A DNA stretch of 64,000 nt from Bugula neritina. Its lineage: Eukaryota > Animalia > Bryozoa. The DNA lies in the NCBI GenBank assembly GCA_964035545.1, contig OZ037769.1:13608633-13672632 (forward strand). The letters are read 5' to 3'. Position numbers and translations under genes: made by a program. Shown piece after piece: positions 13,601-25,600 of the stretch. Under the pieces are notes generated by a model. That model saw nothing but the letters and a program-made list of their open reading frames with translations, searched no databases and was not told the origin of the DNA. Each line of letters opens with the position of its first letter. Within the stretch, counting starts at the first letter, position 1.

Positions 13601-16600
13601 ACATTATTGTGAAAGTGTTTTGTAGTGTATGAAACAAATATTTATAAAAACAGTGCAATTAGCTTTAAAGTGCCAATAACTAAAACCTGTGTAATAATGT
13701 AAAAGTGCCAAATTTTGGGTACTAAGTGCAGTGTTTGGGGTGAGTAGGTTGAAGGCGTTTCAGTTTTGAGGTTTTAACAATGATGTGCATATATATAAAT
13801 GCTGTATTGAGTGATCCTAAACTTTGTGCTGCATCTAGCAATTCTAGTACAATAAATTGCTCTGTATATTGACTTACCATAATCGAGTTTCAATGTAAGT
13901 TGAGTTCCAGCCTCCACGTTGAAGGTGGTGAGATCAGAGAGAATAGACTCATGATCTGAAGGTAACAGCTGTATGTGGTCTGTTGTTGAGTCGTTTGATA
14001 CGTAAATGTTATAACTGGAAGCTGAAAATTAGGAAAAATTATAAATCTTCTTGTTATGCAGGCAATAAGCCATAGCTCTTGTTGGTGCATTTTGTAGTAA
14101 TTATTTTAGACATATCTGTATAAATTAACACCATGATATGTTTCATTTGAAAAAAAATTGATCCTAACAAAAAAATAAACATTTCTTTAACCAAATTTCT
14201 TGTAATTTGGTTGCAGAAGAATGATGCAAAAAACCTAAAAGAAAACACGGCGCAATTACCAAATTCAAAACAAAGTATTATTAATATAGTTTGAATTTTT
14301 TAACTTTACATTATTTTTGAATAATCATAACTATTTTATTCAAATGAGTTTCCTTACTCTTGTACTTTACTGTAAGAAATATCATGTGTACACGTGAAAC
14401 CAAGCTTCAGTCTTACCATTTCCTATATTCAAGTCATTGCCTGGAGCTGTCCATTGTAGTGTGAATATTGTACCATCCTCTTGCTTCTTTACTAACACCA
14501 CTTTTAGGTCTTTAATCTTTTCAGGTGGAGTTTGATCAGCCACAAGTACGTGATTCTCTACCGTCACTACACCGGCTACAAATACATCAGCGATAGCTAC
14601 AATATTCTCTTTTCGTTATTTAAATATTAGCATATATGTATTTGATAGTCATTAAAAAAATTAATTTTTTAACTTCTCAGATTGATTCCATTTTTTCCAG
14701 GATCAGCTTTTATAGAAAATAGTTTATGAAAAGATCGAAAATGATTTCAAATTGCATACACTTTTTGAGCATCTTAAATTATATATTTATATGTTTATAT
14801 ATTGTTTTAAAGGGAGCAGCCGTGGTCTAGAAGTTAGAGCTTTTGCCTAGTGAACGCGAAGTCATGGGTTCGAGCCTTCACAAAGGCCATTGGTGATGTT
14901 AAAAGAAGCATCCAGTCATAATTGCTCCTGTGCCTCATCTGAATAAGTCTTTAGCTATATTTAACAAAAACCCTTTCTCCATCAGGGGTTTCTCACAGGG
15001 ATAGCAACTATAAAATTTCGTGAGTTTGTTATATTGCTTTAATGCAGTTTTTCGTGTAAATGAGTGACTAAAATAACAATTATTATTAAAACTGGGCTGA
15101 ATCACAAATGAATAAATTTTAAGCAACACTATAATATTAATAATTTAATCGTTTAGAGCACATAACCAACCATATATAATTCACTGTATGCATACTTTCA
15201 ACTTTAGTGTAAAATATCTACTGTACTATTTAATAATCAAGTGATTCCAGACAAAAGCAGCTGTTTGTTCTTCTCATGTTGCACTAGTCAAGCCATGTCA
15301 ACATGACAATTCAACAAAATCTTTTTTCGGGATAATTGTGAAGTTATTTATAGAATGAATTTAGCCTATATGCATGCCTGACATGATAAACTGTATAGAT
15401 ATTTTCTTGGTGCTGCTTTCGTAGGTATAATATTATAATATAAAACAAAAAAACACTAACATTACAAATATAATAGCTATTTTCTAGAGATGACTAATTT
15501 GAGTGTAATAACTATAAAAAACTTAACACTATACATAGTAACAGCAGAATGCATGCTTTTTTTCAATTTTTATGGAATTTCAATTTGGCAATTATTATTT
15601 TTATTGCTAAAAAGTGGTAAAATTCTTTACAGTGTGCAATAAATTGTAAATGACATTGTTTTGCATGAGTTTGAATATAGCTTAAGTTACTTATGTTTTA
15701 ATAACAGTTGTATGGCAGATTAATTCTTTGTGTGAAGCAATATCACAATATCATGGATATAAACTGAAATGCTGACCTGAGGCAGTCCTGACTACAGTTC
15801 CCAGACTCTGTCCTCCACAATCTGTACATCTTTTCTTTCTGCTGTCTAGAGACTCAGGTTGTAGACCTTCTCCGTTCACCTCCGTCTATAAATATAATTT
15901 ATTAAATATATGAAAATTTTTGTTTAAATATTGATATTTGCTTAAATCAAAAAGTACCAACGAAAAAAACAACATGCATGCAGATGGTAATTTGATCAGA
16001 AGATTTGCGATGTTTTATGCTCAAGAGATAAAGTGTGCAAGAAGATGTTCTACCTGCAAGCTGTAATAGCCAGATCCAGAAAATTTGTGTGGTAAGAGTG
16101 TAGCTGTATATATTCCATCATTTGCCGTTGAATCCATACCTGTAAAGTATAATTTGATACTACATATAAGCTATAACTTATACATGTTACTACATAAAAC
16201 TCATACATGTTGTGTTATAACTGTTGTAAACAAATTCTTTTGATACAACAGTTTTACAAATAAACTGTAGTGTGCTTAACTTTAAAAAAAAACACATAGC
16301 TTCTAACAAGTTTCATAACACATGTTTATTTATTTCAGTTTAAATCTTGTGCCTATATAGTTTGAACATACACTTTAGGCCATTAACAGACTAATTTTGA
16401 AGAAGAAAATTTGTTTGAAAATCAGGGTTTTCTAATCAATCAGAAAGACCTTGATGTACACAAAAATTATTCTACAAAATTAGAGTCTCACCAAACCCGC
16501 TATCAGAAGAAGGTAGATGAAGTTGTGTTCCGTCAGCAGTCTCAATCACTGTAGTAACTTGCAGATTCAGTACAGGAGTATAACCCTGATAGACTGATGT

Positions 16601-22600: not shown

Positions 22601-25600
22601 TTGTAAAATATGAAGTTATATAAAACTAGTAAATTCTCTAAAGTTTTAAGAATCATGGAATGACAAAGTTATTTAAATTATATACATTGCATAAAAAGAG
22701 ATTTTTTGCAAGTTTGAATCAAACAAGTTATTAAACTAGCTGCTCATATTTGATTGAGTAATGATATAAAATTATTGTAGCACTTTTAGTTTTTACTAAT
22801 GGCTAGCCATTGTTATAGCTATCATACACAAAAAAACTTAATCTTTTATCATCAAAATAACACAATTTGCAAGGATTACTTCTTATTAATCGTGTCAAAT
22901 TTATCATCAAATGAATAACATATCCATGCAACATTGTTTTCAGATTGCCAAGTATGACATAGAAGTGATTTTAAAGCTAATTACAAAACAATATTGGCAG
23001 TATTTGAATGCAGTATGAATACAGGAAATAATTATTCGGAATATGTGGTTATGCTATAATATATTATCTGACTATTTATACTTTGAATGCTAAGCAAAAA
23101 GCTACTATTGGCGTTGAATTTTTGATTTATAGTATATTATATGGCATCACTGTACATTATAGGTGATGAAAAAAGCTATAGGGTGTAATACAATATTATT
23201 ATAATATGTTATGATAGAATATTATTATGTTATGATAGAATATTATTATATTATACTGCTAAATCATATTACTACATGAAACTTTTCTTATAATATTTTT
23301 TATCTCAAATTTTCATTTGAAGAAATGAAAACAGGAGTATCTGCATGTGAGCAAAATACGAATTCAGTTCAAACAATTTTAGATAATGAAAAAGAGCATG
23401 GCACAAGATCTAATTGCCTATGCATGGAGATAACCTGTTCATAGACCATCATACCTCAAGTACACACACTCAAGTAATTACAGTAGCTTTAGCAAATATT
23501 GATATTTCTTGTAATTTTGAGGTATCATTAACAATATGAACATATAAACAATAAAGCTGGCAAAAAAGCAAACTGATGTGAATTCATAAAAAAAACTTAC
23601 AGTGTTGGTTCAAAGGAATTCTCAACCGTGTAGAAATTGGAAGAATTGACATCATTGATATGAGCATCTTCATTAAACAGTCCCCACTTCAAATGAGCAA
23701 ATTCTCTCACAAGTCTTTTCTCTAAAATTTAATTATAACTACCTTATTTATGTTTAATAGAATTGAATTCACACTTGGATGAAAAAGATTATGTCCTATA
23801 AAATGTGAAAAAATTCATTCGTAAAATTTAGATGTTGAATACGTTTATATACTGCTATTTTTTAGTTTTATTTTTTAGTTTGAGATCTTGGTAAGCTAAA
23901 AGATATAGTATGAAGTTGCAGAACTTTTTATAAGCAACTCTCAGTTGGTGAGGCAACTCCCACTTACCAGGATACAAATCTGAACTTGCTGCACTCTTCA
24001 CATAAAAAGCTGTTAGGTGCGTGAAATCTCCCTCCTCTCCACATCCTCCGGGTTGGAGGGTGTACGGATCGTCCCCCCACATTATGTTAGGTGGTGCTAC
24101 TAGAATGTTGGCTGTCTTTACTGACTCTCCATTTGCCTAGAAATCAAAAACAATAAGTCATTTTGATGTCAAACATTTTTACAAACAAGAAGTTTTCTTA
24201 TTCACTGCAAAAATTAATATTAAAACTTCTTATTTAATCCAACACGTACGTGTGATTAAACAAGCTTTGAATGGCTATTTAGTGTTTTTAAATCAAATAT
24301 CTATCAAACCTATTAGTAATAGTATTAATGGTTATTTAAAATAATGCGAATGACAAATTATTGCAATAGAAAATACTTGCTTTTGCATTGAGAAAAACTT
24401 ATCTATATAACAATTAAAGTTTAAACAATTTAGTCAACTTGGAAAACTTACTGTTAACCAGGAATTGCTTGTAGTCCAGGTAGACGGAACGAGTATAGTG
24501 ATATTATGGAAATAGACTTGGTTTTCCGTTGCTGTCAGCAAAGCAGTTGAGGCAGCTGTATAATGTGCCTGCAATATTATATCAAGTATTACTGGAGTCA
24601 TTAAGTGCGTAACATGAATACCTTCACCCAATCAGTAGCCAGCAGCACGTGGAAAAACATGGAATAATAATATTTTAAACTATATTGTGTGTGTGTGTGT
24701 GTGTGTGTGTGTGTGTGTGTGTGTGTGTGTGTGTGTGTGTGTGTGTGTGTGTGTGGTGTGTGTGTGTGTGTGTGTGTGTGTGTGTGTGTGTGTGTGTGTG
24801 TGTGTGTGTGTGTGTGTGTGTGGTGTGTGTGGTGTGTGTGTGTGTGTGTGTGTGTGTGTGTGTGTGTGTGTGTGTGTGTGTGTGTGTGTGTGTGTGTGTG
24901 TGTGTGTGTGTGTGTGTGTGTGTGTGTGTGTGTGTTCCAAGTGAAGTTTCTTTCAAAATTTCGTAAAATAATTAAACTGTTATGTAAAATTATTATCATT
25001 GTTTTGTTGAATATAAAGACATGTAATTTATTTCTATATTTGTATCTTTATTTTAAACTTCAATATAAAATTTCGAAACTGTTAAACCCTACAGCCTGCC
25101 AATGCTGATACAGTTTCGTTTTAAAATAATTTTGAACCAGAAAGGTTGAATTCCCATTTTAATTTGGAAACAGCATAATCTCCTTGTAAGGGGAAAGTAA
25201 CATTTTTTTTAGAGGAGCATTCATGCACTGCCACTAACTTTTAACAACTTCTTATCAAAGCAAATGTTAAACTGAGCTTTTAATTGTTTTAAGATAATTT
25301 CTATTGTAATACTAAATAACATAAAATCAATAAACATTAATAAATTAAAAGCCTTAGGTCACATATATATTACCCGTAGCATATTATTTGCTTATGATGC
25401 AATGTTGGGTTATATAGTCAGAATATTATATACTAACAATAATATTAAATATATCAAATATTATTAGTCATCATCATAATAGTAATATACAAAAGTTATC
25501 CTATTAAAAATTTTAGGATTATCATAAAATAAATTATTATTATTAGTCGCAGCTCACCTGTATATTTATGAAACTTAACCAGGTGTAATTAAAGCTTGGT

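Follow-up and report, generated by a model that had tools for sequence, protein, structure and literature searches.

The 64,000-nucleotide (nt) stretch of the Bugula neritina genome analyzed here (contig OZ037769.1, positions 13,608,633 to 13,672,632, forward strand; "the window," whose own numbering is used below) carries a gene of the CLCA family on its minus strand. CLCAs regulate chloride channels and mucus, and their cleavage is needed for activity. We modeled the gene as 19 exons running from 27475 to 11333 of the window, with a total of 2907 nt and 968 codons before the stop (Table 1). All 19 exons were open, without internal stops, and 18 of the 18 introns could be placed as GT-AG with consistent phases. 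An earlier reading of the letters alone (the original prediction) had described an intact frame of 994 amino acids with a replaced zinc ligand in exon 4 and a basic site in exon 15. The frame is indeed open throughout and the two sites fall in the same exons of the new model, but the length is 968 amino acids here, and one small exon may differ.

To assign the domains, searches were run on single exons or stop-free segments. The Pfam CLCA profile PF08434 matched colinearly over six consecutive exons (profile positions 4 to 260 of 266), and three of the six matches exceeded the gathering score singly. Downstream of these, exon 8 matched VWA (E=1e-4, with a score just under the cutoff for the fragment) and VWA_2 (E=1.9e-4). 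The metal ion-dependent adhesion site (MIDAS) motif D-V-S-G-S closes exon 7, and its Thr and Asp are readable in exons 8 and 9. For the part beyond the VWA domain, exon-wise tblastn gave 37 to 44% identity to full-length CLCAs over 300 to 440 residues, a span that takes in DGIY.. and WTAPGNDL. When a word search was confined to the region around WTAPGNDL, it brought up CLCAs from hemichordates and others but no bryozoan member with Lys or Arg at the first His, in protein collections that appear to lack near relatives, so that this negative carries no weight. A single-exon Pfam scan of the fibronectin type III (FnIII)-like exons gave no match.

The C-terminal membrane stub of the original prediction corresponds to a transmembrane (TM) helix in exon 19, and four paralogues have equivalent TM exons 1 to 1.5 kb past their exon 18. 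A hydrophobic C terminus made by read-through of the exon 18 donor was rejected; similarity to the paralogues ends at that donor (a Trp codon followed by GT). From N to C terminus, the predicted gene product, a type I membrane glycoprotein of the CLCA family, comprises a signal peptide, the zincin-like CLCA_N domain, a linker rich in Thr, a VWA domain whose MIDAS motif is intact, the beta-sheet-rich domain, the loop, an FnIII-like part, a TM helix, and a short tail. Given the signal peptide and the C-terminal TM helix, the loop would lie on the lumenal or extracellular side.

Translation of exon 4 on the minus strand gave ..EKRLVREFAHLKWGLFNED.., in which Arg163 (codon AGA, 23707-23705) replaces the first zinc-binding His of HExxH, just as had been predicted. 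The window gene reads R-E-F-A-H where CLCAs have H-E-x-x-H, so it lacks an intact HExxH, and no second or alternative exon with HExxH was found within the window. With its PF08434 and VWA matches and its REFAH, the gene is a CLCA whose first zinc His has been replaced. The vertebrate motifs that the original prediction cited agreed with fetched proteins (e.g., VHEWAHLRWGVFDEY and ..AL/YIPG..FSRT.SGG). An Asp-to-Asn change slightly downstream (WGLFNED), also part of that prediction, is real but private to the window copy, since the other paralogues retain D-E.

The AGA codon was checked against Logan contigs. A contig of run X1, which may be the sample behind the assembly, matched the window over 23076-23800 with zero differences, AGA included. 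Because the paralogues described below agree, an assembly error at either site is implausible; a change from His to AGA also takes three base changes. Lys or Arg at HExxH positions is not expected to ligate zinc (PMC3650047). HExxH is needed for CLCA cleavage; when the motif is mutated, CLCA1, chicken CLCA1, and CLCA2 are no longer cleaved, and cleavage of mouse CLCA4a is only impaired (PMC9007345, PMC10669480). In the PDB, only the CLCA1 VWA domain is present (6PYO/6PYX), which leaves both active site and loop without a template.

The exon preceding the loop exon ends ..YYSLQ, and exon 15 itself encodes ..ESLDSRKKR/CTDCGG..VVRTAS, which places the predicted RKKR and adjoining CTDC between YSLQ and VRTAS as had been claimed. 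The Arg at the predicted cut (P1) lies +40 residues from the Asp of a conserved DGxY anchor. Measured from the same anchor, intact vertebrate CLCAs have the P1 of their canonical ..AL/Y.PG self-cleavage site at +39 or +40 (the site was taken from its description in PMC9007345). These distances support the view that the R-x-K-R occupies the position of the ancestral self-cleavage site. RKKR is the sole R-x-[KR]-R motif of the protein. With 20 Arg in 959 residues, 0.0016 such motifs would be expected in a loop of 68 residues and 0.023 over the full length of the protein, and a chance origin of RKKR in the loop is unlikely. Exon 15 is 109 nt long, so that its skipping would shift the frame. Matches to PF01483, the convertase P domain, were found at 12 places (at least seven loci) in the B. 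neritina genome.

The window gene is not a singular case. A PF08434 search found about 16 CLCA loci in the genome, nine of which, spread over 11.93 to 15.21 Mb of C5, a single contig, and including the window gene, have Lys or Arg for the first His. Lys is the commoner replacement: REFAH (AGA) was found in the window gene and in a neighbor at 13.58 Mb, and the remaining members have KEFAH (AAA or AAG). All nine retain Glu, the second His, and LKWGLF(D/N)E. Five CLCA loci are intact, with HEWGH in four tandem copies on C1 (26.32 to 26.36 Mb) and HEWAH at C5 4.83 Mb; the best database relative of these intact copies is the bryozoan Watersipora subatra. The nine-gene family appears to be bryozoan specific, and matches to the loop exon were limited to this Lys/Arg subfamily.

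All eight unbroken members of the family carry the basic motif, as R-K-K-R in two copies, R-V-K-R in four, and R-A-K-R in two, and C-x-x-C follows it in seven of these eight. The canonical ..AL/Y.PG sequence is missing from the family's loop, and a G-E-G-L/I-x-P remnant stands about 10 residues upstream of the basic site. The codons of the motif vary synonymously (AGA/CGG/AGG at P4, AAA/AAG at P2, and AGA/CGA/CGG at P1). Between copies, the proportion of synonymous differences (pS) is 0.71 to 0.77, that is, saturated, and that of nonsynonymous differences (pN) is 0.32 to 0.36; the loop exons are 51 to 60% identical among paralogues, like the rest of the protein. Since R-x-K-R was kept with synonymous codon changes despite saturated silent sites, selection has maintained the motif through old duplications, and it is under purifying selection across eight old paralogues.

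Two members of the family separate the elements of the loop. One copy (L040, C5:14538500-14548499) has lost both Cys and about 10 neighboring residues and has kept R-V-K-R. As the two Cys were lost together there and the ectodomain Cys count of the window protein is even, we take it, as a weak suggestion, that the loop Cys bond to each other instead of linking the two chains. The sole copy without the motif (R-V-N-G, at 11.95 to 11.98 Mb) is the one whose active-site exon is split: the exon breaks after ..KEFAHLK (L044:2422) and resumes with ..DLKWGLFDED about 17 kb on (L045:~9450). The insertion that splits it is a transposon. Two members also lack the VWA-encoding region, L040 being without exons 7 to 11 and L033 (C5 15.004 Mb) without exons 7 to 12.

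We favor, at a little better than even odds, a reading in which the window gene encodes a pseudoprotease CLCA that is cut by a convertase at the conserved R-x-K-R at the old autocleavage position. Lys or Arg at the first His would leave CLCA_N no longer able to bind the catalytic zinc; without zinc, self-cleavage would be lost, and the domain would persist as a pseudoprotease retaining its fold. A furin-type proprotein convertase would then cut after Arg761 in the secretory pathway. The cut would yield an N-terminal ectodomain of about 740 residues (CLCA_N and VWA) and an FnIII-TM stub of about 207 residues starting with Cys-x-x-Cys, and the CLCA_N-VWA part would be freed from the stub or held on it noncovalently. 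The convertase site could have arisen as compensation for the lost activity, or an earlier site could have permitted the active site to decay. There is a parallel in the catalytically inactive ADAMs and other receptors matured by furin, which have a metalloprotease fold without catalytic residues and are still matured by convertases at R-x-K/R-R. The parallel is one of analogy, as these belong to another fold family, the cut removes a prodomain, and their site is not homologous to the CLCA loop.

The original prediction had coupled loss of HExxH to the presence of R-x-K/R-R in the loop. The active-site exon of an intact Bugula paralogue, used as the query of an exhaustive search, retrieved 362 relatives; among the best 150 of these, the motif was readable in 125 and substituted in 19 of the 125. 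Molluscan and vertebrate relatives were added by word searches. In the resulting set, R-x-[KR]-R was present in the loop of 12 of 30 CLCAs with a substituted motif ("dead") and of 14 of 191 intact ones (Fisher P ~1e-5, uncorrected for relatedness). Nor was the site equally common in intact invertebrate CLCAs, where it was much rarer than in dead ones. Watersipora subatra P0001, the closest available intact protein from a bryozoan, lacks a basic motif of this kind.

As in the Bugula family, a degenerate motif goes together with a basic loop site (R-[RK]-K-R or R-[VM]-R-R) in dead CLCAs of two other groups, pteriomorph bivalves and holostean fishes; in the bivalves, the combination is conserved between genera. 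Among the bivalves, Pinctada has HQxxH or HQxxR with RRKR, and Ostrea and Saccostrea have HHxxH or HLxxH with RKKR or RRKR. These proteins form one clade, and its intact sister clade lacks the motif. Among the holosteans, three proteins of Amia have RLWAT with RVRR, and Lepisosteus has YTWAI and YSWAV with RMRR. Both groups are lineages independent of Bugula and differ from it in what was lost, the Glu being gone in the bivalves and nearly the whole motif in the holosteans. Their basic site also lacks the Cys pair, and that of holosteans lies about 10 residues further downstream. A dead sea urchin protein (Diadema P0035, RExxR with RLRR) would fit the same pattern of handover, but its basic site is common to intact paralogues, which makes later compensation there unlikely.

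Several observations weigh against the favored reading or against its extension to other animals. Apart from the first His, the family strongly conserves the active-site motif, which could mean that the site has kept some residual function. Four Logan contig sets carry the stretch, none of them recorded as RNA. The residue after the predicted cut (P1') is Cys, possibly disulfide bonded, which is unusual for furin. Furin does tolerate a P1' Cys in pro-endothelin-1, an unrelated small peptide precursor, where it cuts R-S-K-R/C-S-C just before a disulfide-bonded Cys. Across animals, 18 of the 30 dead CLCAs lack a basic site (those of an acoel, Lingula, Aplysia, tarpon, bonefish, and sturgeon, other gar copies, and a group with "CCGS" in the loop). 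Counted by lineage, half of the dead ones are without it. Intact CLCAs may in turn possess one. Intact echinoid CLCAs, including paralogues of the dead Diadema protein, bear RSRR just before SGGLP, and many intact squamate, turtle, and salamander CLCA1-like proteins have a basic site near the self-cleavage site. In the squamate, turtle, and axolotl proteins (P0286, P0292, P0299, P0300, P0312, P0315, P0316, P0321, P0326, and P0248), it reads RRVRR, RRRRR, or RRGRR and lies 5 to 6 residues upstream of ..AL/Y.PG, where it is a possible second cut of the convertase type. No discussion of such a second site was found in the CLCA literature examined. Finally, with the motif and loop columns left out of the tree, eight independent dead/intact pairs gave 2 to 3 concordant and 0 opposite contrasts, which is not significant (sign test, P=0.25 to 0.5).

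Provided that the intact copies of Bugula are without the site, like the Watersipora proxy, Bugula would be one further concordant pair. The proposed coupling is significant in the raw counts but not in the independent contrasts, and the data are suggestive of a tendency and not a rule, recurrent but not exclusive. The broader proposition is that, across animals, CLCAs losing self-cleavage tend to hand their maturation to convertases via R-x-K/R-R at the old autocleavage position, with independent instances in bryozoans, in pteriomorph bivalves, and in holostean fishes; we put it forward tentatively and regard it as doubtful. If true, it would provide a general rule for the passage from a self-processing enzyme to a pseudoenzyme in which the two-chain mature form is kept.

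An alternative to convertase cleavage is that HExxH-intact paralogues of the same animal cut the dead protein in trans at or near the ancestral site, of which the G-E-G-L/I-x-P would be a remnant, with the R-x-K-R kept for another reason or redundant. Cleavage of CLCA1 and CLCA2 is intermolecular, and wild-type CLCA2 cuts an E165Q mutant, but this cleavage of the mutant is inefficient (1.5 to 6%) (PMC10669480). The genome supplies at least five intact paralogues that might act in this way, and the many dead CLCA lineages that have no convertase site must be processed otherwise, if at all; the side-by-side occurrence of both kinds of site in intact reptile CLCAs is also in its favor. Processing in trans would, however, have to do without the canonical ..AL/Y.PG, which the family's loop does not have, and it leaves unexplained why R, K, and R are invariant amid varying flanks. 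We consider it improbable, although not negligibly so.

About equally improbable, in our judgment, is that R-x-K-R-C-x-x-C is an uncleaved structural or binding element, such as a patch for glycosaminoglycan or another ligand beside a disulfide loop, on a membrane receptor that stays in one piece. Conservation of the loop exon equals that of the remainder of the protein, which would not be expected of a simple linker; the Cys pair adjoins the basic residues; and CLCA mutants that stay uncleaved are still able to fold and to enter complexes (PMC10669480). Such an element would nonetheless happen to sit at the cleavage site of the CLCA family, and L040 kept its RVKR after losing the C-x-x-C and 10 neighboring residues. 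The same motif also appears independently, and without the Cys pair, in the dead CLCAs of bivalves and holosteans.

We find it quite unlikely that the window copy is an unexpressed or decaying duplicate whose features were inherited and are not functional. The lack of an RNA set among the Logan contig sets holding the stretch, the Asp-to-Asn change private to this copy, and the broken and VWA-less members of the family would all agree with decay. Against it, none of the 19 exons is interrupted, the splice sites are canonical and the phases agree, RKKR and C-x-x-C are intact here while the demonstrably broken copy has lost the motif, and pN/pS against the paralogues is well below 1, although this mostly reflects shared history. 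Least probable of all, and very unlikely, is that the domain still works as a protease of altered metal coordination or substrate preference that cleaves itself, possibly after basic residues: for all that Glu, the second His, and LKWGLF(D)E are conserved in nine of nine copies and that the His-to-Lys/Arg replacements were called non-random and left unexplained by Lenart et al. (PMC3650047), both His of HExxH ligate zinc in zincins, zinc binding is not expected of Lys or Arg (PMC3650047), and single motif changes abolish cleavage of CLCA1, CLCA2, and chicken CLCA1 (PMC9007345, PMC10669480).

The observation of a replaced zinc His together with a basic site in the cleavage loop is thus confirmed; its interpretation as a handover of maturation to a convertase is partly supported, and its generality is unproven. 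That degenerate HExxH motifs exist in CLCAs was already known, as the original prediction had suspected. In 2013, Lenart et al. found HExxH to be 72% conserved in CLCA_N, with about 28% of the members lacking it, described replacement of the first His by Arg as frequent, and inferred at least five independent losses (PMC3650047). Their study did not examine the cleavage loop and contains no mention of furin or cleavage sites; the Bugula family, replacement of the first His by Lys, and the conserved R-x-K-R are likewise absent from it (PMC3650047). According to a 2022 paper, it was still the sole study of HExxH motif distribution in CLCAs (PMC9007345), and a full-text literature search found no paper tying loss of the CLCA active site to a convertase site in the loop. 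A CLCA pseudoprotease is known in kind; what is new is the putative convertase site conserved at the autocleavage position over a nine-gene family and recurring in bivalves and holosteans.

Compared with vertebrate CLCA1, CLCA2, and CLCA4, the Bugula protein is alike in domain order, in having CLCA_N and VWA with a MIDAS, and in the +39/+40 position of the cut, and it has a C-terminal TM helix as do CLCA2 and CLCA4. It differs in its Arg for the first His and in R-K-K-R/C-x-x-C in place of ..AL/Y.PG. The gene also encodes a Thr-rich linker before the VWA domain and has 19 exons versus 14 in vertebrates (PMC9007345). How dead CLCAs mature has so far not been addressed, and the 2013 survey of active sites left their role open. 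A convertase site at the self-cleavage position would be a concrete answer for maturation in at least some dead lineages, and nine paralogues, of which one is broken, constitute a natural experiment. The case also bears on how pseudoenzymes keep the posttranslational architecture of their active ancestors. Our finding is comparative and at the level of a hypothesis, and it leaves knowledge of vertebrate CLCA1 unchanged, although polybasic sites by the self-cleavage site prove to be common in intact reptile CLCAs and may explain the residual cleavage of some active-site mutants. The features of the gene are listed in Table 1.

Table 1. Exons of the Bugula neritina CLCA gene and sequence features of its loop, in window coordinates
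Feature	Position	Strand	Content and evidence
Exon 1	27290..27475	-	Start Met, signal peptide (hydrophobic core ..MLVILLVGLLAPVAG), and start of CLCA_N; weak PF08434 match (profile 4-30); donor at 27290; paralogues align
Exon 2	24452..24568	-	CLCA_N; PF08434 E=5.8e-8, profile 31-68
Exon 3	23968..24136	-	CLCA_N (..GGCGEEGDFTHLT..); PF08434 E=2.2e-8, profile 72-119
Exon 4	23601..23721	-	Degenerate zincin motif R-E-F-A-H-L-K-W-G-L-F-N-E-D; Pfam profile 128-154
Exon 5	22257..22425	-	Cys-rich part of CLCA_N; Pfam profile 181-224
Exon 6	21534..21645	-	End of CLCA_N; PF08434 E=4.2e-9, profile 225-260
Exon 7	21125..21381	-	Thr/Pro-rich mucin-like linker, then start of VWA with D-V-S-G-S; weak Mucin-like Pfam matches
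Exon 8	20425..20652	-	VWA domain
Exons 9-12	19774-19629, 18461-18317, 18194-17985, 17280-17122	-	End of VWA and beta-sheet-rich domain; tblastn to paralogues and database CLCAs
Exons 13, 14	16612-16492, 16139-16054	-	End of beta-sheet-rich domain, DGIYT anchor, ..YYSLQ
Exon 15	15777..15885	-	Inter-domain cleavage loop
RKKR	15829..15840	-	R758-K-K-R761, codons AGA AAG AAA AGA; R-x-K/R-R convertase consensus; predicted cut R761/Cys762
C-T-D-C	15817..15828	-	Cys pair adjoining the basic site; CxxC in 8/9 paralogues
Exons 16-18	14575-14417, 14021-13878, 13311-13169	-	FnIII-like (..PPEKIKDL..WTAPGNDL..); homology to paralogues and database CLCAs
Exon 19	11333..11458	-	TM helix, 9-residue basic tail, stop codon

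A few observations concern more distant CLCAs. An exon match to the FnIII start at C2:25162093-25162290 (48% identity), with no match there to the family's active-site or loop exon, marks what is in all probability a more distant CLCA-like gene. Three proteins from Logan assemblies (P0127, P0161, and P0172) are long-branch dead CLCAs with HQxxH, KEWFK, and REWAK, respectively, and with "CCGS" and no basic site in the loop. The two with K/RExxK, P0161 and P0172, were considered as nearest relatives of the Bugula family and rejected, as the best matches to the window gene did not include them.

Other observations concern repeats and read depth within the gene. The mucin-like stretch of exon 7 (21150-21330) comprises about 45 Thr/Pro-rich residues between CLCA_N and VWA and includes an 18-nt tandem repeat at 21222-21265; contig depth over it was 50-fold higher in runs X2 to X4, as expected for low complexity. 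Introns 1 and 12 contain long microsatellites, (TG)126, (GT)n, and (TA)38, at 24686-24935, 16665-16806, and 16999-17074. A very high-copy repeat lies in intron 9 at 18885-19672, where summed contig depth in X1 was ~21,000 versus ~120 in flanking bins. Numerous loose ends and internal joints mark this repeat, a probable transposon fragment. Over 20143-20757, X1 gave two haplotype contigs at half depth. Runs X2 to X4, all from one other sample of the same study, showed 85 to 93% likeness to exons and introns over 17900-23800 and, over exon 8, 51 differences plus 20 gap letters in 683 bases, which suggests that this sample represents a divergent haplotype or a sibling species relative to the assembled animal.

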